64,000 nucleotides of DNA from Blastocladiella emersonii ATCC 22665. Its lineage: Eukaryota; Fungi; Blastocladiomycota. The notes beneath the pieces were generated by a model, which had not been told where the DNA came from, did no database searches, and worked only from the letters and a program-made list of their open reading frames with translations. The DNA is taken from the NCBI GenBank assembly GCA_025594325.1, contig JANHCV010000001.1:3782001-3846000 (forward strand), in the 5' to 3' direction. Shown piece after piece: positions 23,710 through 43,870 of this stretch. The stretch's first letter is position 1, and every line of letters starts with the position of its first letter. Position numbers and translations under genes: made by a program.

Positions 23710-24544
23710 ATGCACTCTCTCCGCCGCGGCCTCGCCGTCAGCACGGCGGCGCGCGCTCGGCACTTCCACGCGCAGCGCCCTCAGCTCGACGACGACTTGG
23801 GTAGCAGCGGCGACTCCGACACGACGAGGGACACCGATTCCAGCAGCAACACGTCGTGGCGCGACTTTGCCCTGCTGCACCTCTGGACCGACTCGTCGCC
23901 AACATCAACGACGGCCGCTACCCGCGACGTTCACGGCAGGATCGTCGCGCGCCAGACGCGGCGCAGGGACGCGGTGATGCAGCCGTGGTCGACGGTACCC
24001 GCGGTGCCCAAGTACCTCGGACTGGCGGGCTTGCTCCCGTTCCTCGCGACCACGCTTGGCGCGTACACTTGCGTGCCGACGGATATCTTGGGCTACCAGC
24101 TGCTCCAGGCGACGTACGGCGCGTCGATCTTGAGCTTCATGGGCGCGATCCACTGGGGGTCGGCTATGGCGGGCACCGGCTGTACGTCCCTTCAGTGCGA
24201 GTCCGCTGCGCACTCAAGTCCTCACGTTGCACGCGAGTGTAGCACCTGCGACGGCCAACAAGCGGTACCTCATCTCGGTCGTCCCGAGCCTGGCCGGGTT
24301 CGCGAGCCTCAACATGCCGCCGGACCTCGCGCTCCCGCTGCAGCTGACGGGTTTCGGCCTGCTCCTCGCGCAAGACGTGCACGCGTGGCGGTACCGCGAG
24401 CTGCCGCTCTGGTACCCGACCCTGCGCGTGCTCCTCACGTCGGTCGTCGTCGGCACGCTCGGGGCGACGTGGTACGCCAACAAGCGGCCGCTCGAGGTGG
24501 TCGCGGATATCAAGGAGGGCAAGCGCGTGCGCGAGCGCGAGTAA
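23710..24544 (+). CDS. DUF3429/TMEM69-like mitochondrial membrane protein, copy 1 (intron 24182-24242)
   Basis: Presequence-like N-terminus; PKYLGLAGLLPF, YGASILSFMGAIHWG, YLISVVPSL, LPLWYPTLRVLLT. Confidence 0.8.
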
Positions 24545-24770
24545 CTGCGGAGGCGTTCTCAGCGGTAACGGGAGTGTTTGAGGAGATGAAACCATGGCGC
24601 GACGCGTCGTTCACGATGTACATAGACCAAGTGGTGGCTTGAGGATGCGCATCAAGGACGCGTCGTTCATCGACTTCGACGCGATTTTCTGCAGCACCCT
24701 CGGCTGGCAGCCACTCGTCGCCGGCCCTCTCTCGCACTCTCTCACCCCTGCACAGCACGAACGCAAGCGA

Positions 24771-25763
24771 ATGAAGCTTTCAAGCAGTCACTACATTCGC
24801 CGCGGCCTCGCCGTCTCGCCAGCGGCGTCGCGCTTCCGTTGGCTTCACCCGCGGTTCAAGTCCACCGGCAAGGACTCCCGCGATTCCACCACCACGCCCG
24901 ACACGTCCAACACCGCGGCCGACGACCCTGAGGCCCGCGCGTATCGGGAGGGAAGGAAACGCGCCGTTTCGGCGCTAGTCTCGGCGGTGAAAGCCATGGA
25001 GGCCGACCCGTCCAAAATGGCCAAAGGTATCCTCAACGTCGACAAGAAGGACCTCGACATCTTGTTTCGCCCCGCTCCGCCCGAGATGGAAGAGCGCCTC
25101 CGCAAGCTTCCGCCCGCGGCGACCAAAAAGTAGGGCATCGCGATGCGCCGCAACGACCAGCTGCTGCAGCCGTGGTCGAAAATCCCCGTGGCGCCCAAGT
25201 ACTTTATCTTTGCGATCCTGGTGCCGTTCATCGTCAACACGATCAACGCCTACACGTGTGTGTTCCGAACGACATCTTCAGCTACCAGCTGCAGCAGGTC
25301 GCGTACGGCGGGTCGCTTCTCTGTCTCTACCGGCGCGTTCCACTGGAGATCCGTCGCGGCATACTCAAACTGTACGTTTCCCGCCCTTCGCTGCCACCCG
25401 CGCGTACACTCACGTCACTCGCTGACCGCGTAGCACTCGTGGCAGGCAGGCAGTAAGTGGTACCTCATCTCGCCGGTCCCGCTCATGGCCGGTTTCGCGA
25501 GCTTTTACGTGGCGCCGGACTTTGCGCTGCCCATGCAGATGATCGGGTACGGAGTGATGCTGGCGCAGACGATCCGCATGTGGTGGATCTACCGTGCGCC
25601 GCTGTGGTTCCCGACCCTGCGCGGGCTGCTCGCGATGGTTGCAGTGGGCGCGCTCGGCGCAACGTGGTTCGCCAACAAGTGGACGATCGCACGGCGCGCT
25701 GTACTCGCCGACATCAAGGAGAGTGGTGGTGAGCAGAAGAAGCGGGAGCAGCAGAAGGAATGA
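24771..25763 (+). pseudogene. DUF3429/TMEM69-like copy 2, disrupted
   Basis: In-frame TAG at 25131-25133 before LLQPWS, plus +2 and +1 insertions (~25258 and ~25330) relative to the paralogues. Confidence 0.75.
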
Positions 25764-25924
25764 TGTGCGACGAATACATGGCCTGTGCTGTGCGAGCGAC
25801 GCGTCGTTCATGCCGCCTTCGAACAGTGGCGTGGCTTGGAGCGTTTGCGCGGCGGCCTCGGCAGCCAGTTCTCGTTCGTCTCCTCGCACTCCCTCTCGCC
25901 CATGATCTTCAGAATCACGGAACC

Positions 25925-26961
25925 ATGAATCTTGCACGCAGCCTCTCCATGCAATCTCTCTGCCGCGGCCTTGCCATCACGCCCGCGCCCGCGGCGGCGT
26001 CGCGCTTCCATCTGCTTCACGCGCGGTTCAAGTCGAGCAAGGCCGGCAAGGCCCGCAAAACGCCCGCCGGCAAGACCCGCGACAGGCCCATCGCCATGAG
26101 CGACGGTCCTGGCGTCCGTGGCGACCGTGACGATGTTGACGTCCGTGCGCACCGAGCGGAGAGGGCGCGCGCTATGGAGAAGCTCGTCTCGGCGTTGGAA
26201 GCTAGGAAGGCCGACCCGTCCAAGAAGCTCAACACGGTCCTCACCCCCAAGGAAGTTGACCTTCTGGTCTGGCCCGCCCCGGGCGGTAAGGAGGAGCGCC
26301 TCCGCAAGCTCGAGGCTGCGATGGCCAAAGAAGAGAACCCCGAGACGTGGCGCACCGACGCGCTGCTGCAGCCGTGGTCAACGATCCCCACAACGGACAA
26401 GTACTTGGGGCTCGCGTGGTTGCCGCCATTCCTCGTCAACGCTTATAACGCGTACACGTGCGTTCCGGCGGCCATCTTGAACCACCAGCTGATGCAGGCG
26501 ACGTACGGCGCGACGATCCTCTGCGTCATGGGCTTCTTTCACGGGGTAGTTGTCGAGGTTACCGGTACCAACGACGGTGCGTCTGCCTCTCGTCAATACG
26601 AAGCGCACGCACTCCGCTGACATCGGTCCCTACCCGACCATCCCGTACAGACGGCAAGGAGATCGTGAAGCCATATGTCGTCACGGTGGTACCGCTCCTG
26701 GCTGGCGTCGCGAGCTTCTTCATGCAGCCCGACTACGCGCTTCCCGTTCAGATGGCCGGCCTCAGCCTGCTCTTGGTAAAGGGAGTGCGCACCTGGCGGC
26801 GCGGCCATATGCAGCTGTGGTACCCGACGCTGCGCATCGTGCTCACGACCGTGGCCGTCGGCGCGCTTGGCGTGACGTGGTACGCCGACAAGCGGTCGCC
26901 CGCGCAGTACGACGTGGTCGCCGACATCAAGGAGGGCTTGCGCGTGCTCGAGATCGAGTAG
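25925..26961 (+). CDS. DUF3429/TMEM69-like copy 3 (intron ~26577-26650)
   Basis: MNLARSLSMQSLCRG..., LLQPWS, YGATILCVMGFFHG, LWYPTLRIVLTT. Confidence 0.8.
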
Positions 26962-28272
26962 CCGCGGACGCCCCAGCGGCGGCAGCAGCAGTAGTAGCGT
27001 TGGGTGGGTCGGAATACACGCGGTGTGGCGCAACGCGTCGTCGTTTAGGACCTGAAACTGGGAGACGGTTGGACGGGGAACACGAGCGCTTGAGGACAAG
27101 CTCAGGGGCCACGGTTTTAAGCTCACATCGATCCTCAGTAATCGCACCATGGAAGTTGATGAATCGTTCGCGCGGACCGTCGCCCGCATCGTGGCCGCGC
27201 GAGAGCAGATCGAGGGCGTCGGAGTTACGGTCCGTCGCACGTTGGGCACTGTCGGAATGCCCAACCTCGACCCGTTCCTGCTCCTCGACGATTTTGCGTA
27301 AGAGAGCGCGTGCTGTCGCGGAAGACCTGAAATTCTTACACGAACGAACGGTAGCGTCGATCCGCCGGCGGGGTTCGCGGATCACCCGCACCGCGGGTTC
27401 GAGACGGTCTCGTACCTCCTCTCGGGCAGCAGCGAGCACGAGGACTTTGCCGGGCATCGTGGTCGCCTCGGACCGGGCGACCTGCAGTGGGTGCGTCAGC
27501 ACCGATCACGCCTTGCACGCCGGCTTACACCGCAAGAGTAGATGACAGCGGGCCGCGGGATCGTGCACGCCGAGGTGCCCACGGGCAAGACCACGGCCAC
27601 GGGCCTGCAGCTGTGGGTCAACCTGCCCGCGTCCGAGAAGATGTGCGAGCCGCGGTACCAGGAGCTGCGCGGCGCCAACCTGCCGCGCGTGTCGCCGTCT
27701 CCCGGAATCGACGTGATCGTGCTTGCGGGCGATGCGTTCGGCGCAGCGGCCAAGGTGCGCACCGCCACGCCCATGTGCTACTTTGACGTGACGGTGCAGC
27801 CCGGGTCCCGCGTCGCGGTGCCGCTGCCGCCCGCGTACAATGCGCTCGTGTACGTGCTCTCGGGCGCGGTGGTCGTGAGCGGGTCGCGTGAGGCCAAGGC
27901 GCATGAGTGCATCGTCCTAGACTCGGTGCCAAACGGCGCGACCGCATCGCACGTCGACGCGGCCGTGGCCATCGACGCGACCTGTCCCGCGCGTCTCGTC
28001 GTGCTCGGCGGTGAGCCCATCAATGGTGCGTCTTAGGCGCGAGCATGCGTCCGATCAGCTCACATATCACGACCCGAATAGAGCCGATCGTGCGCCACGG
28101 ACCGTTCGTGATGAACACGTACGACGAGATCCGCGAGGCCATGGACGACTACCACAACGGCCGCAACGGGTTCGAGCGCGCGCCCAGGTTCCGCAGCAAG
28201 ATCGGGAAGCGTGTTGCCGCGGCAGCGGCGGCCTCGGCTGCTTCGACGCGATCCCGAAGCGGGTCGGCCGCC
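26823..28272 (+). repeat. Direct repeat, copy A (1450 bp; partner 43732-45181)
   Basis: Constant offset 16909; identical ORF translations; identical intron and intergenic lines where compared. Confidence 0.95.
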
Positions 28273-28281
28273 GCGAAGTGA
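27149..28281 (+). CDS. Pirin (cupin), copy A, multi-exon
   Basis: EQIEGVGVTVRR, LDPFLLLDDF, GFADHPHRGFETVSY, GDLQW/MTAGRGIVHAE, GLQLWVNLP, EPIVRHGPFVMNT. Confidence 0.95.
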
Positions 28282-28297
28282 GGTTTGTTGTCTCGCA

Positions 28298-29368
28298 GGC
28301 ACGCGCTGCGCCGCAATGCGTTCTTTCCGCGGGAGTCGCAGTTCAGGGATCCGCGGCGAATCTGGTGCACACACCTCTGTGCCCTGTTCTCCTCTCTCCC
28401 TCCCTGCTCTCCGCACAAATATCACTACCATGTATCTCGCACGAACCTCACTCTATGCATCGACTCGAGGTCTGAGCGCACGGGCGCGGGCCGTAACCCT
28501 GGCCGGCTCGCTTCGCGGTCGCCGCGGCGGACCCGCTGCCGCCGCCGCATTCATGGTCCAGCCACCCTCGTAAACACGCAAAACGAGCGAGCTGACACTG
28601 TCGTGCGTAGCGACACGCATCCACCGACGCGGCTGCGCCCGCTGCAAGCACCACCGACGCTTCAAGCGAACCGGCAGCGATCCTCCGCCCCAAGCACTGG
28701 ACCTACTCGCGGCCCGCGATCCTTGCCATAGCCACGGTGTGGGCCGCGCCACACGCCATGGCCGTCATGGGCCTCGTCGTCGATGCGCCGTGGACCATGC
28801 TGCCGACCACGGGCGCCGCGCTGCTCGCCGTGTCGGGTGCCGCGCACACCTTCTCGCTCAACAACTACGATCTCGGTCCGTACTTGTTTTCTTGTTAAGC
28901 AATGGAACCGCACCGCACTCGTCCATTCACGCCCGTACTCGTATCCCCGCGTAGAGCCCAAGCTGCGCACGCACCAGGCCGTCGCGAGCTTCCTCGCGCC
29001 CGTTGGCGCGTTCGCGTCCGTTGCCGTGGCGCCGACCTCGGTCCTGGCCGCCATCTCGATCCAGTTCGCGTCGCACGTCTACATCGACCACGTCGACGAC
29101 CTCGCCATCACGTACGGCGTGCTGCCGCGGTGGTACCGCCTGCGCTTCGCGTACATGTTCCTGTCGGGCGTGGCCCTCGGCGCGCTCGGCTGGCGCAAGT
29201 TCTACCTCGGCGAGGAGCTCGTCATGATCGATACGGCCTTGGACGAGGAAGAGAACGAGGCCGAGGTCGAGGTCGAGGTCGAGCGAGAGGATGTGACTGA
29301 GCCGGAAGGCGGCGAGGAGGAGGCGAGCTTGAGTTGAGGATGATCGTCGCTGATCTGAACGCGCAATA
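28298..29368 (+). repeat. Inverted repeat, left arm (partner ~33003-34079)
   Basis: Position sum is constant at 62377 from 28298/34079 to 29326/33051; diverged homology continues ~40 bp further. Confidence 0.95.
28430..29337 (+). CDS. Divergent DUF3429/TMEM69-like protein, copy 4 (2 introns; acidic C-tail)
   Basis: Presequence-like MYLARTSL...; TTGAALLAVSGAAH matches YGAxILSFxGAIH; VLPRWYRLRF matches LPLWYPTLR. Confidence 0.6.
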
Positions 29369-29498
29369 GAAGCCTGCGAAATCTCGCGCACTCACGATGA
29401 AGTCGTTGATGATGCTCAACCATGATGCTCTGCACGAACAGTCGCGACCCTAAGGCGAGCTCAACGCTAGACGACGAGTGAACGCGAGAAAACACGAT

Positions 29499-30669
29499 CT
29501 ATTCGAAGAGCGACGCGAGCGAGATGCTCCCGCCGTCAGCGCTGCGCGTCGAACGCACAGGCGTGACCTTGAACGACTCGTAGAGCGCCGGTGCCTTGTC
29601 GCCCGACGACGACGCGTCCGCGCCGATCCGCTCGCCGTCAGCGTTGCGCTTGAGAAACTTGGCCATACCCGCAGAACCCGCCGCCTCCTTTTCGGCGCGC
29701 TCGGCCGGCCAGTCGTCGACCACGACGTCGTTCTTGAGCAGGTTCTCGGTTGTCGACCAGCTGAAGCGGATGACGCCCGGCCAGCCAAACACGGGATCGA
29801 GGGTGCGCTTGAGCCACGCGACCGTGTTCGGGTCTACATGTCGCAAGTGTTCGCGTTAGAAGCGAGGCTGGATCGCGCTGCCGTGGGGGAACGAACGCAC
29901 CAGACGGATAACCCGATCCCCAGGTCGTGTCGATCTCCTCGGTGAGAGCGGACTCGACAAACTCCCAGCGCGAGAGGACGTGGTCGCGGACGACCTTGGC
30001 CACGATACTCGCGGCACTGACCGTCGCGTACAGCGAGTCGGCCTTCTTGGCGACGGTGAAGCCAATCTTCGGGAAGCGCGCCTTGAGCTTGCGCTGGTAC
30101 GAGTCTGGCGGGCCGACCGTGTCGACGTAGACGTGCTCGAGATTCACGCCGCGGTCGACGAGCGACTGGATCAGCGACATGGTGGTGTCGTGTGCGATCG
30201 CGTTCAGGTTGTACTTGGACCGCTGCAGCATCCACTCGGAGAGGTCCTGCGGCGACAAGGCATTGTACGCGAAGCCGAGCTGCGGTTCGCTCGTGATGGC
30301 CTCCTCGTCCTGCGAGTCCAGCGCGAGGTCGCCGAGCGACGGAAGCGCGGCGCCGTTGCCCATGGCGGCGGAGGCAATCTTGGCAAAGCGCGTCGCGCGC
30401 TGCTCCTCGTTGAGCACCTTGGAGTCGTCGACGGCCATGTCACGCAGGATCTGCTCGCTCGGCTTGGGGAGGTAGCACACGGCGTAGACCATGGGGCCGA
30501 GGACGGGTCCACGACCAGCCTCGTCGACACCGAGAATGCAGGGCTCGGTGCGGCACGCAGCGGGGACCTCGCTGAAGTACTGGACCGACCGGACCATGGG
30601 CAGTGGCGGGAACGTCGCCGCGTGCGCATCCGTCGGGTGCGGTGGCGGATCCATGGGTGTTGATGACAT
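29499..30669 (-). CDS. RNH201: Ribonuclease H2 subunit A
   Basis: CILGVDEAGRGPVLGPMVY, DDSKVL, HVYVDTVG, KKADSLYATVSAASIVAKVVRD, GSGYPS-DPNT, RFSWST; one intron. Confidence 0.96.
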
Positions 30670-30883
30670 TGCAGCAAGTGGTAGAGTGCGGATGGGGCTC
30701 TCGTCGTGATGAACGAGTTGATCAGGTCGCAGCAGCGCGGTCACGCCGCCCAAGCCGACGATTCCGAGAGCGCGTCGCGCCCACCGTGTGCGACCATGAT
30801 TTCTCCCCTCTCCTCCGTCCCTGCCTCTGGACCAACGCCAGAGTGCTCCATGAATCGTTGCTGAAGCCATCGCATAGACAGCC

Positions 30884-32407
30884 ATGACCTCCGTCTTCGC
30901 CGCGCGCGCGCCCGCAGTCGGCGCCTCGGCCAAGGCCGCTGCCGCTGCCGCCGCGAGCGTCCCGATGCTGGTCGGCGCCGACTCGAGCCCCTACGTCCAC
31001 AAGCTGCGCATGTACTTCAAGTACCGCGGCATCGAGATCGAGGAGGTCCAGAACAACCCGGATATCTTCGCCAGCTTGATCCTGCCTCGCACGAACCTCA
31101 CCATGATCCCTGTCGTTGTGGACGGCGATGCCGTCCTTTCGGACACGTACGCGATCTCTCCGTCGAAGGATTACACGCAACATACTAACTTAACGACCTA
31201 TCACGTTCAGGGGTCTCATCATGGACCACTACGAGGGCAAGCTACCCATCGGCAGTCCGCAGTACCCGTCGCTCGTGCCGGCCACGCCCAAACAGCGCTT
31301 CGTCTCGCAGGCGTTCGAGTTCATGTCCGAGGACTGGTTCTTCCTCGTCGGCTTCGCGCAGCGGTTCGGTCACCTCGAGGAGCACGAGCGCTACCTGCTC
31401 AACATGGTGGCCGAGGGGACGGGCCGCTCGACGGGTCTGATCCCAAAGTACGCCAAGTCGCGCGAGCTACTCGACCAGCGCTTCCTTCGCGCGCGCAAGC
31501 CGTGGGGCGTCACCGAGGAGACCATGCCCGTGTTCGACGCGTACCTCGAGCGCTTCCTCGTCCAGCTCTCGGCCCACTTTGACACGCACCGCTACCTGCT
31601 GTCCGACGAGGTGCCGTGCCGCGGCGACTTTGCGCTCGCTGGCCAGCTGTCGGGGTTCATTGCACGGTACGCCATCGCGTTCGTCTCGAGAGAATCGAGT
31701 GAAGCTCGCTCACGCTTTGCGAATCGTGTAATCACACTTGTAGCGATCCCGTCCCGTCGTACGTGCTCAAGACCAAGGCGCCCAACCTGATGCGGTACCT
31801 CGCGCGCATGCAGAACGCGCCCGAGGCCGCCTACGAGTACCCGAACCGCGTCGTGCACCTCGACGGCGTTGCCAACGCGCCCGCCGTGACTGTGACGCGT
31901 GCCGACACCAAAACGTCAGCCGCCCCGACCTTCCTCGCCAACGACGTGATCCCGCCGACCTTGTACCCGGCGCTGTCGGCGCTAGTCGACCTGACTACCC
32001 ACGTCGAGCAGACGCACGCGCTGGCCGTCAAGCACGCGACCACGGCCGCGGCCAAGAGCGGGACCAGCGGCACCGAGTGGGTCGAGCTGCCGCGCGCTGT
32101 CGGGTACCCGCGCTTCACCGTCGGCGGCGAGGAGAAGGGCACGCGCATGGCGCAGGTCTTCTCGCTCTTTGCCTGGGCTCGCATGTGGCGCGGCGGAGTC
32201 GATCCTCACTCGGCCGCCGAGGCTGACGTGGTCCTCGGGATCGCTGCTGCCACGTCAAGCAGCGACACGACCGCAGCCGCCGATCCCGACGCGTTTTTGG
32301 CCAAGGTGCGCGGGCTCGCGTCCAAGCTGGTCCTCGACAAGTCGGTGCGCCGCAACGCCGAGAACCAGATCGAAATCCGTGCGGTCGCGGCCACGGCCAA
32401 GCTGTGA
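30884..32407 (+). CDS. Glutathione S-transferase-like protein (introns ~31147-31210 and ~31667-31744)
   Basis: GADSSPYVHKLRMYFKYRGI, MIPVV...LSDT, YLLSDEVPCRGDFALAGQL, RDPVPS...APNLMRYLARM. Confidence 0.8.
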
Positions 32408-33002: not shown

Positions 33003-34079
33003 TCTATTTGCACGTTCAGATCAGCGACGATCATCATCAGCTCGAGGTCGTCGCCTCCTCCTCGCCGCCTTCCGGCTCAGTCACATCCTCTCGCTCGACC
33101 TCGACCTCGACCTCGGCCTCGTTCTCTTCCTCGTCCAAGGCCGTATCGATCATGACGAGCTCCTCGCCGAGGTAGAACTTGCGCCAGCCGAGCGCGCCGA
33201 GGGCCACGCCCGACAGGAACATGTACGCGAAGCGCAGGCGGTACCACCGCGGCAGCACGCCGTACGTGATGGCGAGGTCGTCGACGTGGTCGATGTAGAC
33301 GTGCGACGCGAACTGGATCGAGATGGCGGCCAGGACCGAGGTCGGCGCCACGGCAACGGACGCGAACGCGCCAACGGGCGCGAGGAAGCTCGCGACGGCC
33401 TGGTGCGTGCGCAGCTTGGGCTCTACGCGGGGATACGAGTACGGGCGTGAATGGACGAGTGCGGTGCGGTTCCATTGCTTAACAAGAAAACAAGTACGGA
33501 CCGAGATCGTAGTTGTTGAGCGAGAAGGTGTGCGCGGCACCCGACACGGCGAGCAGCGCGGCGCCCGTGGTCGGCAGCATGGTCCACGGCGCATCGACGA
33601 CGAGGCCCATGACGGCCATGGCGTGTGGCGCGGCCCACACCGTGGCTATGGCAAGGATCGCGGGCCGCGAGTAGGTCCAGTGCTTGGGGCGGAGGATCGC
33701 TGCCGGTTCGCTTGAAGCGTCGGTGGTGCTTGCAGCGGGCGCAGCCGCGTCGGTGGATGCGTGTCGCTACGCACGACAGTGTCAGCTCGCTCGTTTTGCG
33801 TGTTTACGAGGGTGGCTGGACCATGAATGCGGCGGCGGCAGCGGGTCCGCCGCGGCGACCGCGAAGCGAGCCGGCCAGGGTTACGGCCCGCGCCCGTGCG
33901 CTCAGACCTCGAGTCGATGCATAGAGTGAGGTTCGTGCGAGATACATGGTAGTGATATTTGTGCGGAGAGCAGGGAGGGAGAGAGGAGAACAGGGCACAG
34001 AGGTGTGTGCACCAGATTCGCCGCGGATCCCTGAACTGCGACTCCCGCGGAAAGAACGCATTGCGGCGCAGCGCGTGCC
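33003..34079 (-). repeat. Inverted repeat, right arm
   Basis: Reverse complement of 28298-29368. Confidence 0.95.
33037..33947 (-). CDS. Divergent DUF3429/TMEM69-like protein, copy 5 (same as copy 4 except the last residues)
   Basis: Lies within the inverted arm; ends EEEATTSS* versus EEEASLS* in copy 4. Confidence 0.6.
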
Positions 34080-34182
34080 CACGAGCACTGAGCGAGAGAG
34101 ACGTGACGAGACGAGTGTTCGGTGCGCAAGGAGGTATTTTATACGTGTAGCTCATGGGTATGACACAGCTCGCCCACTATCA

Positions 34183-35996
34183 TCACGCCACGACGCCGAC
34201 GAACACGGCGGCCACCAGCGCCAGGACTATGGTCGCGATGCCCGCGACGGTCTGCGGCGCGGCCACCGACGCCGCCGTCTCGGCCTCGGTCCCCGTGTCG
34301 GCGGCGCCCGTGTCGGCCATGGCCGCGTCCGGCCCAGCCGCAGTCACGACGGTGGCGGCGGGGTCAGCCGACGCCTCGAGAGCGGCGTCGAGGTCCCAGT
34401 CGCGCAGGGCCTTGAACTTGGACGCCTCGTTCTCGTTGTTGAGGAAGGCGGCGAGGTACTTTGCGGGGTCGTCCGAGTTGGCGCGGTTCGGGATGGCGTG
34501 GGCGGCGGGCCACTCGTCGGGGCTGCGCGGGTCGGCCTCCATCTTGTCGATCCACGCGTTGAACACGTCGCACGCCTTCTGCGCGCGCTCGACGGGGATC
34601 TCGAGCAGGTCGAGGCGCCACTTGGGCAGCGGCGTGCACCGGTGCAGCGGGCCCGTGCCCGTGTGGTTGAAGATGCGGAAGTCCTTGCCGCCGCCGTTGG
34701 TGCCGTGGCCGTCCATGTCGCGGCGGCGCAGCTCGGTCGGCGCCGTCGTCGAGGACAGCTCGGCGTAGTCGTAGCACATGACGTTGTAGACGTCAGCGAC
34801 CGTGCCGACGAGATCTTGCCACGGCGGGATCCGGGTGTTGAGGGTGACGGTGCCGACGCCGCCGGGGGCGTGCGTGCCCGAGTAGTCCCAGTACAGGCGC
34901 TCGACGTCGAGCCACTGGCGCTTGTACCAGATCTGGTCGACTAAGGGCGCGGCGAGCGAGTTTCATGGGGTTAGATGTCGATTTCATGGGCGGGGGAGGT
35001 GCGTGTGGGGCGAGGGGGTGGGCCGGAGCAGGGGCGGAGTGAAAAGCGCACCGTGGCTGCAGGTCAGGGAGGTGGCGCGGGGTCGGGGTGGCCGAGTCGG
35101 TCGTCGTCGTCGGCGGTCATACACGCAGTCCGAGCGTTAGTACACCCCTTCCGCGGCGTAGGTACAAGGAGCCGCGCCATCCCTGTGGTGGGCGTAGAAG
35201 AGTAAATCGTTGGGGGAGTACTGCAGCGTCATCATCTGGCCGCCCACGGCCGAGTGGACGTCGGCGTGCTGACCATTCTCGTAGGCGATCGCGAAGTCGG
35301 AGAACGCGGCGTCGCCCATGACCATGGCGGCGATCGTGCGCGGATCGACAAAGGTCGTGGCCGACGTCAGGGCGTGCTGGAGGCACTGGCCGTCGGTCGA
35401 GCGCCAGCCGGCGAACGGGCCCGAGATGACGCACCCGTTGCTGTCGCCGACGTAGCGCGGGCTCGTCGGGTTGAAGATGCTACGAGGGCGAGATCGGGAG
35501 ACGTGCGTCAGTCGTCTGCGCACGACGCTGCAGAGGCACAGGTGAAGAGGGAGACGGAGGGGAGAGAAGCGAGAGAGGGAGCGTACTCGTAGCTCATGAA
35601 CGGGTCGAAATAGGGCAGGCCCTTGACGGCGCCGTTGGTGACGGCGATGAGCTCGGTCTCGAACTGGTAGATGAACCGTCGGTGCCACGCCAGGAACAGC
35701 ACGCCGCCGTGCGCCGGCTGCGTCCACTGCTGGTGGATGGCCACGTACTGGTCCATGCGCCCGGACCGCTTGAGCGCGTTCATGCCGGCCGTCAGCGCGG
35801 CCCACTCGGTGTCGTCGAGGTCGCGGATCTCCTTACGCAGGCGCGGCGCCTTGCACGACGGCGCCGCGGCGTCGGCCGGGCTAGCCGCGAGCAGGACGGC
35901 GAGGACGATGGCGGTCACGGCCGTGGCCACGAGCAGCGCGCGGGCGCGTGGGCGGCGCGGCGCCGTGGACGCCGTCGGTGGTGGTGCGCGATGCAT
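34183..35996 (-). CDS. Secreted tyrosinase-family (type 3 copper) protein with C-terminal hydrophobic tail
   Basis: Signal peptide; RLRKEIRDL, AIH...AHGGVLFLAWHRRFI, LPYFD, HADVHSAVGG, SPNDLLFYAHH, VDQIW, MCYDY. One splice junction is unresolved. Confidence 0.88.
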
Positions 35997-37016
35997 GGCG
36001 AGTGTGTGTGTGATGCCGACGATGGCGAGGAGCGGGGGAGGAGCGAGAGGTGCGAGAGGTGCGCGAGGGCGAGGGGGAGTGTGCAATGTGCGAGGGGGTG
36101 CTCGAGGAGCGATCGTGTAGCGAGGCGTCTCTTGTGCTAAGGGGGGCGCGGGGAGGAGCGATCCGCTCAGGCCTTATGAGGTCCGACTCGTTGGCGCGGT
36201 GCGCGGGAAGTGGACCCAAGGTCGGCCGACCGCGAAATGGCGCAGTCGGCCGGAATTGGAGCTTGACTCCACTCGGCGCACCGCCGCCGCTGCTCGCCGA
36301 GCCACGCAGCACCGCTCGCCAAGAGCCGCAGCTGCACCGGCAGTTGCCGCGGTGCGCACGGCCAGTCACCGCTCCCTTGGACCCAGATCTGCCGCCGGCG
36401 GACGTGGTCCAGGGAGGGAAGGTCGGTCAAGGCGGGAAGAAATGGCGCAGTCGCTTCCCTTCTTGGCATCGGGCCTGTGCGTCCGCGCACGCTCTCAGAC
36501 AAGGGATTGCGATGCCGCATGTGCAGCCGCATCGCTCGGCCGCGCGCGCGGAGGCGGCAGAGCTCTGCTGCCTCGCTCCCACGGGCCCATGGCGCAGCGT
36601 CAACGCGCGTCATACTTGCCTCAGACGGTGTCATCCAGTGAGGCATTTGTGGAGCTCCGACGGGTTCCATCAGTGTTCACGAGGGCCGCGAGACGGCGGT
36701 CTGGACCTAGCTGCACGAGCCGGATCATGGCGCCTCGCATGCTTCACGCTCACGTCGCTCCAGCGTCCAGCTCACGGGCTTGGTGTTCGTCGGCGGTATG
36801 TGGCGACGAGACGTGCGAGACCGTGCGAGCGATCCGGAACAGGGCGCGGGCGCCGCGTCGGGGCAGCAGCGGGACGCGCCGACGCGTTGCGCATCCGCAC
36901 GTGGTGCTGTCGGTGCCCGCGCTCGAGGAGTTCTACGCCGTCGCCGAGCAGGGCCACCCGCCCCTCGCCTTTCCGCTCGCCCACCCCGACCACCAATCCC
37001 CTCCCCTCCTCACACG

Positions 37017-38418
37017 ATGCAACGCATGAAAAAACCGCGATCGCGGTCCAACTCGCCGCACCGGCGCAGCGCGCCCTCGCCACCCGCCCCAGCGGCCCCC
37101 GCAGCGGCACAACCCGAGGCCGACCTGGCGTGGCCATGGGTCCTCGCCGCGTCCGTCGCACTCCGCTTCGGAATGCTGGTATACGGCGCGTGGCAGGACG
37201 CGAACCTGGCCGTGCCGTACACGGACATTGACTACCGCGTCTTCACCGGCGCCGCGCGGGCCGTGTCCCGTGGCCGCCCGCCGTACGACCGCGCGACGTA
37301 CCGGTACACGCCGCTGCTCGCGTGGCTGCTGGTGCCGGGCACGGTGCTCGGCCTCGAGGCCGTCTGGGGCAAGCTGCTGTTTGTCGCCGCCGACCTCGTC
37401 ACGGGCGTTCTCGTCCGCGAGCTCGCCGTCACCGCCGTCGCGCGGTGCGGACTGCCGGCGGGGAGTGCGCGACGGCGCGCGACGGGGCTCGTGGCGGCGG
37501 CGTGGCTGCTCAACCCGTTTGTCGCCAACATCTCGACGCGCGGCAGCGCCGAGAGCCTCATGTGCGCGCTGTGCGTCGCGGTCCCGCTGCTCATGGCGCG
37601 CGGACGGTCGTTTACGGCCGCCGCGGTGCTCGGGCTCGCGGTCCACCTCAAGATCTACCCGGGCGTGTACGCCATCCCGATCGCATGGCGGATCCTGTTC
37701 GGTTACGGCGACGCTCCAGCAAGCTGGCCGAAACGGGTCGGCCGGCTGGTAGCGTTCGGCGGCACTGCGCTCGCCGTATTCGCTGGGCTGTCGGCCGCCA
37801 TGTGGGCCGTGTACGGGTGGCCGTTCGTCGAGCACACGTACCTGTACCACGTCACGCGCACCGACCACCGGCACAACTTCAGCGTCTACTTTTACCTCAT
37901 GTACCTCTCGCTCAAGGACGAGGTCGCGACCGCGGCCGCAGCAGCTGTCCCTGCGGCGTCGTGGGTCGCGCTCGCCCCGTTCGCCGCGCAGGCCGGCGTC
38001 ACGGCGCTCCTCGGCGTAGCGACGGCGCGGCTCGACCTGACCGTGGCCATGTTCCTGCAGACGTTTGCGTTCGTGGCGTTCAACAAGGTCATGACGTCGC
38101 AGTATTTCATGTGGTGGCTGTGCTACGTGCCCGTGGTCGCCGTGTACCTCAGCGGGCGCGTCTCGGCGCGCACGGTCGTGGTGCTGGTCGCGGCGTGGGT
38201 CGGCGCGCAGGTACAATCTGACGGACTTACGGCATGTGGGCGGGATCACTCACAATCGTTCGTGTGTGCGATGGTAGGCGGCGTGGCTGCACCAGGCGTA
38301 CTGGCTCGAGTTCCGCGGCATGCCGACGTTCCGCGGGCTCTTTTTCGCGGGCGCGGCGCTGTTTGTCGTGCACATTGCGATCCTGGTCGTCATTCTCCGG
38401 CGCCTGCCGCGGCCGTGA
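37017..38418 (+). CDS. GPI14: GPI mannosyltransferase I (PIG-M/Gpi14), intron 38211-38277
   Basis: YTDIDYRVF, RATYRYTPLLAWLL, NISTRGSAES, VHLKIYP, YHVTRTDHRHNFS, FVAFNKVMTSQYFMWW. Confidence 0.96.
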
Positions 38419-38478
38419 TAAACAAGGAAATGTGTTCACTATTTGGTTAACTCTCACGCTCCTCCGACAAACCGTCAG

Positions 38479-39267
38479 TCAATCCATGGCCTTGTCAAAG
38501 TAATTCGGGTCGTTCTTGACGCGCTGTACGGCGCGCGAGTACCACGCCTCGAACGCCTTGACGGGGATCCAGCTGTCGTCGCGGACCTGCGTCGTTGGCG
38601 CCGCGCCGCCGCCGAACCCGAACGCGTTGACCGCCGCCGCGGGGACGCCGCCGACCGTGTGCGCCATGGGCGGCAGCGCCGTGGTCGCAAACGACGTCAC
38701 GTAGTTGTACAGGTTCTGTAGAATGTGCGTCGACTGCGATAGTGCCGACGACGCGCTGCCGCCGCTGCCGCCGCTCATGGACATGGCGGATTGCCGCGAC
38801 GACGGGAGCGCGGCGAGCTGCTGCATGACGAGGTCTACAGTGCGCGGGTCGCGTGGGGAAGGGTGAGCGACGGCCATCACTCGGTCTGCGCGAGAGAACG
38901 TACCAATCGGCTCGACCGAGATCCCGAGGTTCGCAGGCGGCAGCGCGAGCGCCGTAGCCGCGTCGGTCATGTCCATATCCTCGGTACTGCCGGCCGCGCT
39001 GCCGTCGAGCCCGCGCAGGCCCGAGAGGCGGAAGATGGCGCTGGGCTTGTCGTTGGAGAGGGCGCCGAGCATCTGCCAGTCGCGGCCGGGCAGCTGGATG
39101 TGGACCGTGGCGGCAAAGCCGGCGGGGAACGGGTCCGAGACGAACACGACGAGGTGGTTGACGCGCTCGGACCCGGCCACCATGGTCGCGAACTTGGTCA
39201 GCGTCGGGTCGACGGGCGCAAAGTCGGCCTGCACGGGCCGCCCGGCGCAGATGAGGCCGAACTGCAT
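38479..39267 (-). CDS. OPI10: Hikeshi/OPI10 (DUF775) family protein, one intron
   Basis: MQFGLICAGRPV, NHLVVF, WQMLGALSNDKPSAIF, GISVEP, NLYNYVTSF, AFEAWYSRAVQRVKNDP. Confidence 0.9.
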   Translation of the reverse strand: MQFGLICAGRPVQADFAPVDPTLTKFATMVAGSERVNHLVVFVSDPFPAGFAATVHIQLPGRDWQMLGALSNDKPSAIFRLSGLRGLDGSAAGSTEDMDMTDAATALALPPANLGISVEPIGTFSRADRVMAVAHPSPRDPRTVDLVMQQLAALPSSRQSAMSMSGGSGGSASSALSQSTHILQNLYNYVTSFATTALPPMAHTVGGVPAAAVNAFGFGGGAAPTTQVRDDSWIPVKAFEAWYSRAVQRVKNDPNYFDKAMD

Positions 39268-39894
39268 GGTTGTCGATGCGTGAGGTTACGATGCGTTGCG
39301 TTGCGTTGCGTAGAGCGTGGAGGAACGCGGACAGTGCGCGGCGGAGCGCTTTATAGCGGCAACGGGTGCATGGCATTCGCGGCGCGTCCAGAAGCTTGAG
39401 GATGGTCGGCGGCGGCCGCGCACGTGGCGCAGCGCGCGGCGCGGCGATCGCTGTCTCGCGCGTTGTCTCGCGGCCAGCGTGCTGCCCGCGGCCCACGGTG
39501 GCCATCGCCGCCGCGCCCGCCTTGGCCAATCGGGCGACATTGCCGGCAACCTGCTCGCGCGCATGAAAGGGCCCACGCGCGCTACAGTAGATCCAGCGAT
39601 GAACAAGGGCGGCCGTCGCGGCGCCGCTGTTGCAGCGACGCCACAGAGCACCGGCTGCCTGGGCGGCCTTTCGACCTGCTGCCCCTTCCCGCACACCCGC
39701 CCTCCACCTCCTCTCTCTCCCCGCACACAACCGCATACGACCGCACTCGCTTCATAAGACAGCGTCGTAAGCGGCGTGAGCCCGCACCGCAGACACCCTA
39801 GACGACCCGGCTTGCCACGCGCGCTCGCGAACACCCTGGTCCCTGGCCGTCCGTCCCTTCATAACCCCCGCCCGCGCTCCCACCACCCCCGCCT

Positions 39895-41528
39895 ATGGCC
39901 ACTACCCCGAAGCCTTCTGCGACTATGACCTCGGGCAACAAGTCGTCCGGCTCGCGCCGCACCCTCATCGCCGTCGTGGTCGTCGTGGTCCTCGCCGCGG
40001 CCGCCGCCGGCATCTACTTTGGCGTCGTCAAACCAAAGTCGGCCGACTCCTCCGCGACGAATGGTAGGTCTTCCTCCTCCTCCCCGACGCCCGTCCCGGG
40101 CGCCCCGACCACCAGTCCCAGCGGTAACGGCCAACCAGCGACTCCAGTCGCTCCGCCCACCGTCAACTTCCCCATCTCGAGCCCCATCAGCGTTCGTGCG
40201 TACACCCTTCTTTCGTCGTTGTTGTTGTTGTTGCGCGCTCGGCGGGCTGGACGGGGCCCTCGCATCGCCCGGGACCCGTCGGGTGGCGACGCCCACGCAC
40301 GCAGCGCGCCGTTTCACAGAATTCGAAACTGACCGACCGCTTCCCGTGCGCGTAGCCATGACGGGTCTGCCGCTCAAAAAGTTTGGCAACGGCGTCGTCT
40401 GGGGCTCGCACATCTGGGGGTACGCCCGCCGCCCTCCTCTATCAGCCGCCATCGCATCCCTGACCCTGGCCCTGGCCCTGGCCCTGACACTCACGCGAAC
40501 GTGTAGCGACAACTACGTGTGGGCGCCGACCGTGGCCGAGATCTCGCGCCGGTACGGCTCGGTGCCGGGCGCGCTGGGCGGCTTCTACCACACGGACGCG
40601 GCGACGGGGATCCAGTACCCGGACGCGTTCCTGGACCAGGCGCGGCAGGCGCGCGCGGCCGGCACCTGGTTCTACGTGACGCTGGAGCCGCGGGCCGTCG
40701 GGCTCAACGTGACGGCCGACACGCTGGCCAAGTGCGTCGAGCTGCTGCGCAAGGCCAGCGTCGAGATCGGCGCGCCGGTGCTGCTGCGGTGGGCGCACGA
40801 GATGAACGGCAACTGGTACCCGTGGTCGCAGCAGCCCATCAAGTACAAGCAGGTGTGGATGCAGCTGCGCGACATGCTCAAGAAGGCCGCGCCCAAGGTC
40901 GCCATGGTGTGGTCGCCCAACATCGGGTTCCCCGCCGAGATCAAGTTCACCGCGCCCGGGTCCCCCGAGTACCTCGCCATGGACACGGACAAGAACGGCA
41001 AGGTTGACGAGCTCGATGACCCGTACGAGCCCTTCTTCCCGGGCGCCGCCAACGTCGACTTCATCTCGGTGTCCATGTTCTGGTTCGGCAACGAGTACCC
41101 GAACTTCAAGAACCAGATGCCGCCCGCCGACCACGTCGCCAAGAAGCTCCGCGAGCCGCACGACCTCACCCGCTTCTACCGCGACAGCAAGTTGCCCTTC
41201 ATCATCTCCGAGACCGCCTCCACCTTCTTCCGCGACGCGCGCGCCGCCGGCGTCGACGAGGTCGCCATGAAGCAGACGTGGTGGCGCCAGCTCATTGCCG
41301 AGGACCCGACCATGGTCATGTGGTACGTGTCTCCTCTCGCGTCGTTGTTGCGAGCGATTGCCGCCGTGGATTGACACGACGACGCTCCGGGACTGTAGGT
41401 TCGAGTTCACAAAGCAGGAGGACAACTACCTCAAGGACTCGTGCATCACCAACAACACCGCTGTCATCAACGCCTTCAAGGACGACATGAAGACGCGCCC
41501 GCTCGTGTTCGGCCCGCCCGCGGCATAG
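39895..41528 (+). CDS. Glycoside hydrolase family 26-like protein with N-terminal TM anchor, multi-exon
   Basis: TM LIAVVVVVVLAAAAAGIYF; LLRWAHEMNGNWYPW; AMVWSPN; PFIISET. Confidence 0.85.
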
Positions 41529-41793
41529 ATGGCGCGAGCTTCCAGATCAGTTTTGGTTCATCTCGCATACACGCCGCACTTGCATATCCCGTCACTCTTG
41601 TGCGTTGCATGAGCTTTCGTCGTCTTACCGGCGTTGAGGAAGGAGAGACTTGGAGACGAAGGGTCGGTGGAGAGAAAGCGCGGCGGCGGCGTGACCCGTC
41701 AAGTCGCGTCGATCGCGGAGACGCCTCGATCTCAGCCCTCGCCCGGCACCCCGACTCTCGCTCCCCACAAACAACAACCCCAACTTATGAAAC

Positions 41794-42576
41794 ATGTTGA
41801 TCGCGACTAGTATCCGCACGCAGACCCTCCGTCGCGGCCTCGCCGTCACCACGATGTCGCGCCAGCGGCTGTTCCACGCGCAGCGGCCGCTCCTGTCCAC
41901 TTCGAGCACCGAGGACACGGCTACCGCGACAGCCACCACCGCTAAGGTCTCCGCCGCTGAGGGCGCCGTGACGCGGCGCACGGACGCGCTGCTGCAGCCG
42001 TGGTCGACGGTTCCCGCGGTGCCCAAGTACCTCGGCCTCGCGGGCCTGCTCCCGTTCCTCGCGACCACGCTTGGCGCGTACACTTGCGTGCCGACGGACA
42101 TTATGAGCTACCAGCTGCTCCAGGCGACGTACGGCGCGTCGATCTTGAGCTTCATGGGCGCGATCCACTGGGGGTCGGCTATGGCGGGCACCGGCTGTGC
42201 GTCCCTTCAGTGCGAGTGAATCCGCGCGTGCGTTGGACTAACGTCGCACGCGAGTGTAGCGCCTGCGACGGCCAACAAGCGGTACCTCATCTCGGTCGTC
42301 CCGAGCCTGGCCGGGTTCGCGAGCCTCAACATGCCGCCGGACCTCGCGCTGCCGCTGCAGCTGACGGGTTTCGGCCTGCTCCTCGCGCAAGACGTGCACG
42401 CGTGGCGGTACCGCGAGCTGCCGCTTTGGTACCCGACCCTGCGCGTGCTGCTCACGTCGGTCGTGGTCGGCACGCTTGGCGCGACGTGGTACGCCAACAA
42501 GCGACCGCTCGCGCAGTGCGACATGCTCGCGGACATCAAGGAGGACGCTCCGCGCAAGGGTTTGAAGAAGCAGTAA
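41794..42576 (+). CDS. DUF3429/TMEM69-like copy 6 (closest to copy 1)
   Basis: The core PKYLGLAGLLPF...YGASILSFMGAIHWG...LPLWYPTLR is nearly identical to copy 1; the N-terminus differs. Confidence 0.8.
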
Positions 42577-42825
42577 CGTGGAAAAAATGTAATACAAACT
42601 ATCGTGGCGCAACGCGCCGTACATGCATGCATGCTTCGGGACGTGGTGGCGGCTTGCAGGAGCGCGCGCGCGGCCGAACGCGTTCGTTGCAGCGTCGACG
42701 CATTCAGGGGCAAAGAAGACCGACCCCCTGACGCCGCATCCGCCGCCCACCTCTCGCCCTTCCTCAAAGGTTTCTGCACTTCCCTCGCTCTTCCTCTCGT
42801 CCATGATCTTCAGAAACACGAAACC

Positions 42826-43870
42826 ATGAATCTAGCACGCAGTCTCTCCATGCAATCTCTCCGCCGCGGCCTCACCGCCACGCCCGCGGCGGGGTCGCGC
42901 TTCCATCTGCTTCATGCGCGGTTCAAGTCGAGCAAGTCGGCCAAGGCCCGCAAGAAGGCCGCCGGTAAGACCCGCGACAAGTCCACCGCCACGCCCGACC
43001 ACCCGGCCATCCGTGACGCCCGCGGAGTCCGTGACCATCCTGCCGTCCGTGACGATGCCGACATCCGCGCGTATCGAGCGGAGAAGGCGCGCGCCCTGGA
43101 GAAGTACACCGCGGCAATGGAAGCCAAGAAGGCCGACCCGTCCAAGAATGTCCTCAAGTCGCTCACCCCCAAGGAGATCGACCTTCTGATCCGGCCCGCC
43201 CCGGACGGGATAAAGGACGAGCGCCGCCGCAAGATCGAGGCTGCAATGGCCAAGGACCAGAGCGACGAGACGTGGCGCGAGGACGCGCTGCTGCAGCCAT
43301 GGTCAACGGTACCCGCAGAGAAAAAGTACCTTGGGCTCGCGTGCCTGCCGCCGTTCCTCGTCAACGCGTACAGCGCGTACACGTGTGTGCCGGCTGCCAT
43401 CTTGAGCCACCAGATGATGCAGGCGACGTATGGCGGATCGGTCCTTTGCTTCCTCGGCCTGTGTCATCGGGTCGTTGTTGAGGTCTATGACGACGGTGCG
43501 CCCTTTCTTGTCCGTTCAGACGCGCATGCACTCGCGCTGACGTCGCTCCCATCCATACAGGAGAAGTGCAGGTCACGAGGCCGTACATCATCTCGGTGAT
43601 TCCGTTCCTGGCCGGCGCCGCGAGCTTCTTCATGCAGCCCGACTACGCGCTTCCCGTCCAGATGGCGGGGCTCGGCTTGCTGTTCGCGCAGAGCATCCCG
43701 CGTGGAGGCGCGGCCACCTGCCGCCGTGGTTCCCGACGCTGCGCATCGTGCTCACGACCGTGGCCGTCGGCGCGCTTGGCGTGACGTGGTACGCCGACAA
43801 GCGGTCGCCCGCGCAGTACGACGTGGTCGCCGACATCAAGGAGGGCTTGCGCGTGCTCGAGATCGAGTAG
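42826..43870 (+). pseudogene. DUF3429/TMEM69-like copy 7 (closest to copy 3) with a -1 frameshift near 43698-43702 (or a sequencing error)
   Basis: ATC ccgcg TGG AGG CGC GGC CAC has only 5 nt where the paralogue needs 6; the downstream frame matches copy 3. Confidence 0.65.

Follow-up and report, generated by a model that had tools for sequence, protein, structure and literature searches.

The DUF3429/TMEM69 family is widespread, from bacteria to humans, and is almost always represented by one gene per genome. Long and variable linkers before the first transmembrane helix (TM1) are normal in its eukaryotic members. In two related proteobacterial contexts the DUF3429 gene overlaps a DUF2805 gene and is followed by a photolyase gene, a DUF2256 gene and a photolyase-related gene; this neighbourhood is a lead, and nothing more, to a role in light or oxidative stress. 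Searches of the PDB with Foldseek gave no match at E<=0.001, and VIA-align returned generic helix bundles only, with Z up to 9.8, which is under the informative level for helical proteins. We found no literature linking TMEM69 with the inner membrane. Among fungi, the only DUF3429 member studied experimentally is Bcmimp1 of Botrytis cinerea, which has four TM helices and ends in an acidic C-terminal tail; its GFP fusion is mitochondrial, its knockout shows more ROS, and the published description is of one gene whose growth phenotype is not obvious (PMC4767927).

We analysed a window of 64 kb from contig JANHCV010000001.1 of Blastocladiella emersonii ATCC 22665 (assembly GCA_025594325.1), the whole stretch of DNA considered here. 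Searches with tblastn, using family members as queries, found exactly seven DUF3429/TMEM69-type loci and no eighth one in the window; the seven start at 23710, 24771, 25925, 28430, 33947 (minus strand), 41794 and 42826. These are the same seven places and starts that had been proposed from the sequence in the original prediction, and the three subtypes, presequence-like leaders and variable linkers and tails proposed with them are all present in the copies. Two copies are conserved (copies 1 and 6, type A), three are strongly altered (copy 3 of type B and copies 4 and 5 of type C) and two are broken (copies 2 and 7, grouped with type B). PacBio HiFi reads, on average 10.5 kb long and at ~185x depth, underlie the assembly, which was polished by Pilon with 65-bp short reads; BUSCO duplication is 1.2%, and tandem arrays of diverged paralogues are reported as a general feature of the genome (PMC9730499). 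Given reads of this type and length, the copies are not an artefact of collapse or expansion.

Assignment to the DUF3429/TMEM69-like family, as first suggested, is upheld by types A and B passing the gathering score of Pfam PF11911, and the low copy number ascribed to the family elsewhere also holds: among the best 20 matches, with names checked, the 15 named ones outside B. emersonii represent 15 species, each by one 50%-identity representative, and the Catenaria, Sorochytrium and Allomyces loci each hold a single such gene. Two outcomes had been set beforehand as refutations of the cluster, a collapse of the copies in a long-read assembly and a stable paralogue set common to relatives; the assembly is already a HiFi long-read one, and the relatives, each with a solitary gene, do not share the paralogue set. 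Type A is 57-63% identical to the products of the zoosporic-fungal DUF3429/TMEM69 genes (Catenaria P0002, B. britannica P0003, Sorochytrium P0004, Allomyces AMAG_01000 P0029 and a Batrachochytrium “Transmembrane protein 69”), and like these homologues it has all of the conserved residues, with the position and phase of its intron as in Catenaria. The zoosporic-fungal loci, in contrast, are not syntenic with the B. emersonii cluster, and their products are without the B-type extension, the type-C core or the RRGLAV-type leader common to the cluster copies.

The leaders are rich in arginine, and in the five copies modelled from the start the first 26-52 positions are free of acidic residues; the leader of copy 2 has one, D35, at the edge of a 35-residue stretch. 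As all copies have presequence-like leaders, the most likely destination of their products would be the mitochondrial inner membrane, which is also the one proposed for Bcmimp1.

For all comparisons that follow, exons were joined only for alignment, trees and dN/dS, while searches and folds were run without joined spliced models, with X or NNN standing at every break of the damaged copies. Values of dN/dS come from protein-guided alignments; those from nucleotide alignments of distant pairs were discarded.

Type A is the canonical form and is under strong purifying selection. Copy 1 (23710..24544, plus strand; exons 23710-24181 and 24243-24544) is intact and encodes 257 aa, its intron lying in phase 1 in the loop between TM2 and TM3; copy 6 (41794..42576, plus strand; exons 41794-42196 and 42260-42576) is intact and encodes 239 aa. 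Their core proteins are 97% identical, whereas linker, tail and flanks are unalignable. Against the PF11911 gathering score of 39.1, the two exons of copy 1 score 56.2 and 58.0 bits and those of copy 6 score 57.2 and 35 bits. Each of the two copies has 34/34 family-conserved residues, including the two that are near-invariant as motifs, G-A-x-H-W-G where TM2 ends and W-Y-P-x-L-R ahead of TM4, and dN/dS between the two cores is 0.10 (interval 0.02-0.31). AF2 folds the domain of copy 1 with pLDDT 90 and pTM 0.82 into four long helices and two short N-terminal helices. The public annotation of copy 1 (H9P43_001434; P0001) is N-terminally truncated to 168 aa. The ancestral role is most likely performed by type A.

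Type B is represented by one intact and two broken copies. Copy 3 (25925..26961, plus strand; exons 25925-26576 and 26651-26961) encodes 320 aa. Copy 7 (42826..43871, plus strand) has lost 1 nt near 43698-43700, so that its frame runs into a premature stop and TM4 is missing, and the B-like copy 2 (24771..25763, plus strand) is disrupted by an in-frame TAG (25131-25133) and by two insertions, one of +2 near 25263 and one of +1 near 25328; these lesions confirm the original reading of copy 7 as frameshifted and copy 2 as a pseudogene. Exon 2 of copy 3 scores 42.0 bits against PF11911, above the gathering score; copies 7 and 2, at 22.0 and 17.5 bits, fall under it because they are broken or were searched piecewise. 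The family-conserved residues number 23/34 in copy 3, 23/34 in copy 7 and 19/34 in copy 2. The HWG motif is lost in type B, its position being occupied by H-GV in copy 3, HRV in copy 7 and HWR in copy 2; W-[YF]...R, unlike HWG, is retained in all copies, types B and C included. High GC3 persists in copy 2, although it is dead, so GC3 does not show function. In the NCBI models copy 2 appears as two separate genes (120 and 148 aa), the latter of which (P0044) omits TM2, copy 3 is truncated to 243 aa (P0027), and the break in copy 7 is bridged by an implausible 26-nt GT-AG “intron” (P0028).

Type B has also gained a predicted charged helical N-extension of ~110 aa. AF2 models the core of copy 3 at pLDDT 87-97 and the extension at 55-77, a low-confidence helical model. 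No Pfam domain matched the extension, its search against the ESM Atlas came back blank, and sequence search with the N-terminal exon found no relatives outside the B. emersonii genome. Between copies 3 and 7, dN/dS is 0.33 in the core (interval 0.19-0.54) and 0.89 in the extension (interval 0.51-1.69), the latter compatible with neutral drift. Branch dN, obtained by arithmetic from three pairwise dN values with Catenaria, is ~0.26 for B and ~0.06 for A; after the A/B split, type B thus changed about four times faster than type A, and it is constrained now. Over the B branch as a whole dN/dS averages near 0.9, and simple relaxation of constraint, with no new function, could account for much of the type-B change. 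The description of the cluster as rapidly evolving therefore holds only in part: it is true of type B in its past, does not apply to the type-A cores, and for the N-terminal segments agrees with neutral change.

Type C is the most altered. Copy 4 (28430..29337, plus strand; model exons 28430-28555, 28611-28875 and 28955-29337) is apparently intact and encodes 257 aa, though its intactness rests on a model whose first splice donor, GTCCAG, is weak. Copy 5 (33037..33947, minus strand; 258 aa) is its inverted duplicate; its first 254 residues are identical to those of copy 4 (254 of about 257), and both copies have an acidic tail. Copy 4 keeps 14/34 family-conserved residues, with H-T in place of HWG and with the WY..LR motif retained, and a hydropathy scan (threshold 1.3) marks two strongly hydrophobic segments in type C. 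The NCBI model fuses copy 4 to pirin in a product of 518 aa.

Matches of type C to the family were sought with the exons queried separately. Copy 4 scores 18.4 bits against PF11911 (E=0.0028), under the gathering score; with hhalign, its exon 3 matched, in register, a family profile from which copy 4 had been left out (E=5.6e-5, probability 66%), and its exon 2 gave E=0.04. In BLASTP against the 178 family proteins that we collected, only Allomyces was matched (E=6e-4). A word-based search among candidates of 101-322 aa found no relatives of exon 3 outside the B. emersonii genome, and the ESM Atlas returned no usable match for type C. Putative family membership draws support from the second intron of copy 4, which matches the intron of copy 1 and that of Catenaria in position and phase, by nucleotide homology of its 5′ end to type B, by a length equal to that of copy 1 and by its location within the cluster. 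Copy 4 sits on a branch of length 3.87, and the free tree excludes it from the B. emersonii clade, though with weak support (83/31); its placement inside the clade is neither rejected nor proved by the AU test (p=0.16). It is the 5′ end and the intron position that point to an origin of type C in common with types A and B.

Given the losses in types B and C, we considered plain decay, in which only type A is functional while B and C are redundant and drifting to pseudogenes, copies 3, 4 and 5 being simply those not yet stopped. Two of the five B and C copies are already broken, 11-20 of the 34 family-conserved residues are missing from these types, HWG included, the B branch averages ~0.9 in dN/dS as noted, and the high GC3 of the dead copy 2 means that GC3 in the other copies is no sign of function. 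Copy 4 compared with copy 1 has a nominal dN of 1.0, at or above its dS of 0.6, although this dS is judged unreliable, as the alignment is uncertain and synonymous sites are saturated and composition-biased (GC3 0.84-0.91). Set against this, the upper bound of dN/dS in the core of copies 3 and 7 is 0.54, and the core of copy 3 is folded confidently by AF2; the three exons of copy 4, each in a different frame, are all open, its intron phase is conserved, and it keeps hydrophobic TM segments, the WY..LR motif and an intact presequence-like leader. We regard decay of all B and C copies as unlikely, albeit the most credible of the alternatives.

The history of the cluster is one of repeated duplication. 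Phylogenetic analysis placed copies 1, 6, 2, 3 and 7 in one clade (support 99/98), and this B. emersonii A and B clade is sister to Catenaria and B. britannica, with joint support of 100/99; the A/B duplications are therefore lineage-specific. Copies 1, 3, 4, 6 and 7 have the phase-1 intron between TM2 and TM3 in common with Catenaria. The value of dS is 0.57 for A against B and 1.3-1.4 for A against Catenaria; concerted evolution within the cluster could make the A/B split look younger than it is. A tract of 1450 bp is identical at 26823..28272, where it holds the last 139 bp of copy 3 and a pirin gene, and at 43732..45181, where it holds the tail of copy 7 and a second pirin gene (both on the plus strand; both pirin genes are Pfam matches), and it is embedded in a larger duplication, ~80% identical, of 25882-28272 and 42783-45181. 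At copies 4 and 5, an exact inverted repeat of 1029 bp (28298-29326 / 34079-33051) flanks RNase H2A and GST genes. The two exact tracts are evidence of homogenisation, and together with the lineage-specific duplications and the dead copies 2 and 7 they bear out the birth-and-death evolution with homogenisation that had been proposed.

Exact identity over both tracts might also be expected if the near-identical copies (4 and 5, and the pirin tract) or the frameshifts came from mis-assembly or from mis-correction by Pilon, as 65-bp polishing reads can mis-map between paralogues. The 10.5-kb HiFi reads, however, span tracts of 1-1.5 kb at ~185x, and the identical tracts are bounded sharply by unique or ~80%-identical sequence; moreover, the deletion in copy 7 lies in diverged sequence, ~30 nt outside the identical tract, and copy 2 carries three separate lesions. 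We hold an artefact of assembly or polishing to be very improbable.

The original prediction went further and likened the cluster to conflict-driven families such as wtf-type drivers and mito-nuclear suppressors. On such a reading the diverged copies would be selfish or antagonistic elements, either a wtf-like poison/antidote pair or mito-nuclear suppressors, and their conflict would drive recurrent duplication, conversion and rapid change. The evidence in favour is circumstantial: lineage-restricted multi-copy membrane proteins with pseudogenes and gene conversion, and fast change of types B and C, for which our searches found no orthologues. The analysis lends this likeness no support, as dN/dS is not reliably >1 in any region (0.10 and 0.33 for the cores, 0.89 for the N-extension), type A is conserved like an ordinary housekeeping gene, and divergent tandem arrays are reported to be general in this genome (PMC9730499); genetic conflict has, in our estimation, very little to recommend it. 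A meiotic driver would need a sexual cycle. To our knowledge, none has been described for B. emersonii. It would equally surprise us if types B and C were antagonistic partners of type A, poisoning or modulating an ancestral complex, with the two-copy dosage of A as a counter-measure; were it so, the mitochondrial inner membrane would be the place of action of a nuclear-encoded module of conflict or toxin-antidote-like type, turned over by duplication, conversion and loss.

The cluster looks like an ordinary gene-family expansion, and we consider it probable that a four-helix DUF3429/TMEM69/Mimp1-type gene underwent a lineage-specific expansion from one copy to seven. The cluster would have arisen by duplication in several rounds, both tandem and segmental and in one case inverted, and gene conversion would have reshaped it later. 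After duplication types B and C each underwent a burst of protein change, and the near-invariant HWG was lost from both; type B acquired its charged helical N-extension and has since regained constraint, and type C acquired its acidic tail. These two types would most likely be sub- or neo-functionalised, for example as stage-specific forms or partner subunits of A, and the broken copies would be ordinary casualties of birth-and-death evolution.

No new biological principle is opened by the cluster alone; it does, nevertheless, provide in one organism a natural series of a conserved form, one that bears an added soluble extension and one so rebuilt that it is hardly recognisable, which shows which residues can change (HWG and the TM3 aspartate) and which are fixed (the histidine and W-Y...R). 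The variants could be compared by experiment in a model water mould with a striking mitochondrial life cycle. The locus further brings to light specific mistakes in the public gene models and is a clean case of gene conversion within an older duplication.

With regard to known systems, the cluster resembles the wtf killer meiotic drivers of Schizosaccharomyces pombe in consisting of multi-copy, lineage-restricted, multi-pass membrane genes with pseudogenes and gene conversion, but there is no relation in sequence or fold, and, unlike the wtf drivers, the cluster has no dN/dS >1 and its founding copies are conserved housekeeping-type genes. Bacterial DUF3429 proteins (~145-170 aa) have the same four-helix core and the motifs LGxAGLLPF, HWG and WYPxLR, whereas the presequence and linker of the B. 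emersonii copies are absent from them. Closest is Bcmimp1, which belongs to the same Pfam family and shares with the cluster an N-terminal presequence, a variable linker and four TM helices, its acidic C-terminal tail resembling those of copies 4 and 5; in contrast to that one gene, B. emersonii has seven clustered copies, with HWG lost in types B and C and an N-extension of ~110 aa in type B.

Seven places in the window, and none elsewhere in it, were identified by tblastn with DUF3429/TMEM69 family members, at the coordinates claimed in the original prediction; we number these copies 1-7 in order of position. The canonical type A comprises copy 1 (23710-24181 and 24243-24544, forward strand, 257 aa) and copy 6 (41794-42196 and 42260-42576, forward, 239 aa), both intact. 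Type B, distinguished by an N-extension of ~110 aa, has one intact member, copy 3 (25925-26576 and 26651-26961, forward, 320 aa). The damage predicted in the other two type B genes was located: copy 2 (24771-25763, forward), called a pseudogene, has an in-frame TAG at 25131, a +2 insertion at ~25263 and a +1 insertion at ~25328, and copy 7 (42826-43495 and 43561-43871, forward), called frameshifted, has a 1-nt deletion at ~43698-43700 that leads to a stop too early, before TM4. Type C consists of copy 4 (28430-28555, 28611-28875 and 28955-29337, forward), with an open model of 257 aa and a weak first donor (GTCCAG), and its mirror copy 5 (33947-33037, reverse), in which 254 of 258 residues are the same. 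Membership of DUF3429 (Pfam) held in part: copies 1, 6 and 3 score above the gathering threshold, whereas copies 7, 2 and 4 are weaker matches. Exon 3 of copy 4 is in register with a family profile built without that copy (hhalign E=5.6e-5); exon 2 aligns weakly (E=0.04).

The copies stand in what is already a long-read assembly, the setting in which it had been proposed that they might collapse: PacBio HiFi reads (mean 10.5 kb, 6.4 Gb, 34-Mb genome) were used, duplicate contigs were purged, and polishing was done by Pilon with 65-bp Illumina reads (PMC9730499). BUSCO duplication is 1.2% in B. emersonii, compared with 28% for Catenaria and 60% for Allomyces, and tandem duplication is a recurrent theme in the B. 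emersonii genome (PMC9730499). Across the cluster (23710-29337, 33037-34061 and 42826-43871), most of the public funannotate/NCBI models are in error: the model of copy 1 (168 aa) is missing N-terminal residues, that of copy 3 is cut short at 243 aa, copy 2 appears as two separate “genes” (120 and 148 aa), the latter without TM2, copy 4 shares a single 518-aa model with pirin, the 195 aa given for copy 5 cannot accommodate all three exons modeled here, and in copy 7 a 26-nt GT-AG “intron” spans the frameshift. The N-terminal exon of copy 1 is 100% identical to protein H9P43_001434 of B. emersonii ATCC 22665, encoded on contig JANHCV010000001.1 (5.14 Mb) of GCA_025594325.1.

Gene order from the left is septin, copies 1, 2 and 3, pirin, copy 4, RNase H2A, GST and the inverted copy 5, followed by tyrosinase, PIG-M, Hikeshi, GH26, copies 6 and 7 and a second pirin gene. 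Upstream of the septin gene, a very GC-rich stretch contains a tandem array of an 18-bp unit (16744-17208, ~26 units by spacing). Self-BLAST revealed a direct duplication of the type B gene with pirin (25882-28272 and 42783-45181), in which the first 940 bp are ~80% identical and, past a sharp boundary, the last 1450 bp are exactly identical (26823-28272 and 43732-45181); an exact tract within a duplication otherwise so diverged reads as the mark of gene conversion, acting within a duplication that is itself older. Beginning 26 bp past the end of this tract is the left arm of an exact 1029-bp inverted repeat (28298-29326 and 33051-34079), which contains copies 4 and 5; its arms lie on either side of a 3.7-kb spacer that holds RNase H2A and GST, each single-copy, and if they recombined the RNase H2A-GST segment could be inverted. 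Between copies 1 and 6, DNA identity of 92% is confined to the TM core (23954-24554 and 41970-42544); their introns are 72% identical, and leaders, linkers (between leader and TM1), tails and flanks can hardly be aligned. Synonymous divergence is graded, with dS of 0.12 for the A-A core, 0.26-0.52 for B-B, 0.57 for A-B and 1.3-1.4 between type A and Catenaria. Together, the graded dS, the duplications and the identical tracts indicate a cluster built in several steps and homogenized patch by patch; with the dead copies 2 and 7, they bear out the birth-and-death with homogenization that had been proposed.

A maximum likelihood tree of 28 family members placed copies 1, 6, 2, 3 and 7 in a single clade (support 99/98), sister to Catenaria anguillulae plus B. 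britannica (joint clade 100/99), with a long type B branch (0.45 + 0.56). “Blastocladiella” britannica itself pairs with Catenaria (97/95) and not with B. emersonii, consistent with the paraphyly of the genus noted previously (PMC9730499). The position of copy 4, on a branch of 3.87, is loose, and placement inside the B. emersonii clade was not rejected (AU p=0.16). Three independent characters would nonetheless tie copy 4 to the history of the cluster itself: its second intron matches, in both position and phase, the one in copies 1, 3, 6, 7 and Catenaria, at a site where Sorochytrium has none; its 5' end is homologous in DNA to type B, upstream ATG included (MYLAR versus MNLAR); and it has the RGL leader motif found in 7/7 copies and missing from relatives. 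The Sorochytrium intron is located elsewhere.

A paralog set kept stably by relatives had been named as evidence against a rapidly evolving family. In Catenaria, Sorochytrium and Allomyces the DUF3429 gene is solitary within ±10 kb, and none of these loci is syntenic with the cluster. An exhaustive profile search over 1.84 billion representatives returned 2886 matches at E<=0.001; names were sought for 20 of the best, and the 15 named outside B. emersonii belong to 15 species, with one representative apiece. B. emersonii has three 50%-identity clusters in this search, with copies 4 and 5 additional, below the listing score. Sequence searches found no match outside the B. emersonii genome for the type B N-terminal exon or type C exon 3. 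The tree, the solitary non-syntenic loci and the single representative per named species thus indicate that the paralog set is not common to relatives.

Selection was assessed by Nei-Gojobori dN/dS on protein-guided codon alignments with bootstrap intervals. Between copies 1 and 6 the core is 97% identical in protein, with dN/dS of 0.10 (0.02-0.31), and the linker and tail, which contain indels, give ~0.7-1.0 with a wide interval; between copies 3 and 7 the values are 0.33 (0.19-0.54) for the core and 0.89 (0.51-1.69) for the N-extension. In none of these regions is dN/dS reliably >1. A nominal value of 1.7 for copy 4 versus copy 1 is unreliable, as the alignment has 26% identity and synonymous sites are compressed at GC3 0.84-0.91. 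With Catenaria as third taxon, the B branch has accumulated a replacement distance of ~0.26 since types A and B separated, and the A branch ~0.06. Among 34 columns each at least 85% conserved in 22 other family members, bacteria included, copies 1 and 6 keep all 34, copies 3 and 7 keep 23, copy 2 keeps 19 and copy 4 keeps 14; the HWG motif at the end of TM2 is gone from all B and C copies, and the histidine and W-[YF]...R are retained. The pattern is one of rapid change once the genes had duplicated, with type B since back under constraint. Long, variable, low-complexity linkers ahead of TM1 are the rule in chytrid and blastoclad homologs, so linker variability in the cluster is not special.

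The copy 1 domain is modeled as two short and four long helices (AF2, pLDDT 90, pTM 0.82), and the copy 3 core equally well (pLDDT 87-97), its N-extension forming three low-confidence helices. PDB structure searches returned only generic helix bundles, so the fold gave no functional lead. The leaders are arginine-rich, with the first acidic residue at positions 27-53, a composition that is typical of matrix-targeting presequences and makes them presequence-like.

The cluster is real and unreported within the literature searched. It is best read as an ordinary expansion, specific to this lineage, of a gene that is normally single-copy and encodes a presumed mitochondrial membrane protein. It comprises two conserved founders, two dead copies and derived variants that, with some uncertainty, probably retain function, and gene conversion has shaped them all. 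The suggested resemblance to wtf-type drivers or mito-nuclear suppressors is unsupported: no test favors it, and it draws only on features that all young tandem families share.

Allomyces macrogynus has its single DUF3429 gene between two 220-aa beta-carbonic-anhydrase (Pro_CA) paralogs (L004, 8423-12647), and in Sorochytrium milnesiophthora the gene lies 160 bp upstream of that for the complex III 14-kDa subunit (UCR_14kD) and near a ribosomal S13 gene (L003, 7996-11573). In Catenaria anguillulae a DUF1365 gene (576 aa) is found ~4 kb downstream (L002, 14754-16484); bacterial DUF1365 genes are part of stress-lipid clusters, often close to photolyase genes. On proteobacterial contigs (L006, 5754-10129; L007; L008; L009, 5345-7323), in two related contexts, the beginning of DUF2805 is overlapped by DUF3429, with genes for DNA photolyase, DUF2256 and a photolyase-related protein (DPRP) coming next and uvrA and DUF2237 adjoining; this looks like a neighborhood of light or UV-damage genes. 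A third bacterial context (L005, 1260-6335) has DUF3429 beside a DEP-domain gene, GST, DUF302 and glucose-6-phosphate dehydrogenase (G6PD). GST and pirin neighbor the fungal cluster, and GST recurs at this bacterial locus, possibly by coincidence.

The bacterial contexts offer a weak lead to a light or oxidative-stress role for the family, consistent with the phenotype of the only member studied, Bcmimp1 of Botrytis, a DUF3429 protein with four TM helices: its deletion raises ROS and leaves growth and virulence unaffected, and Bcmimp1-GFP overlaps MitoTracker (PMC4767927). Bcmimp1 ends in an acidic C-tail (PMC4767927), which resembles the tail of copies 4 and 5.
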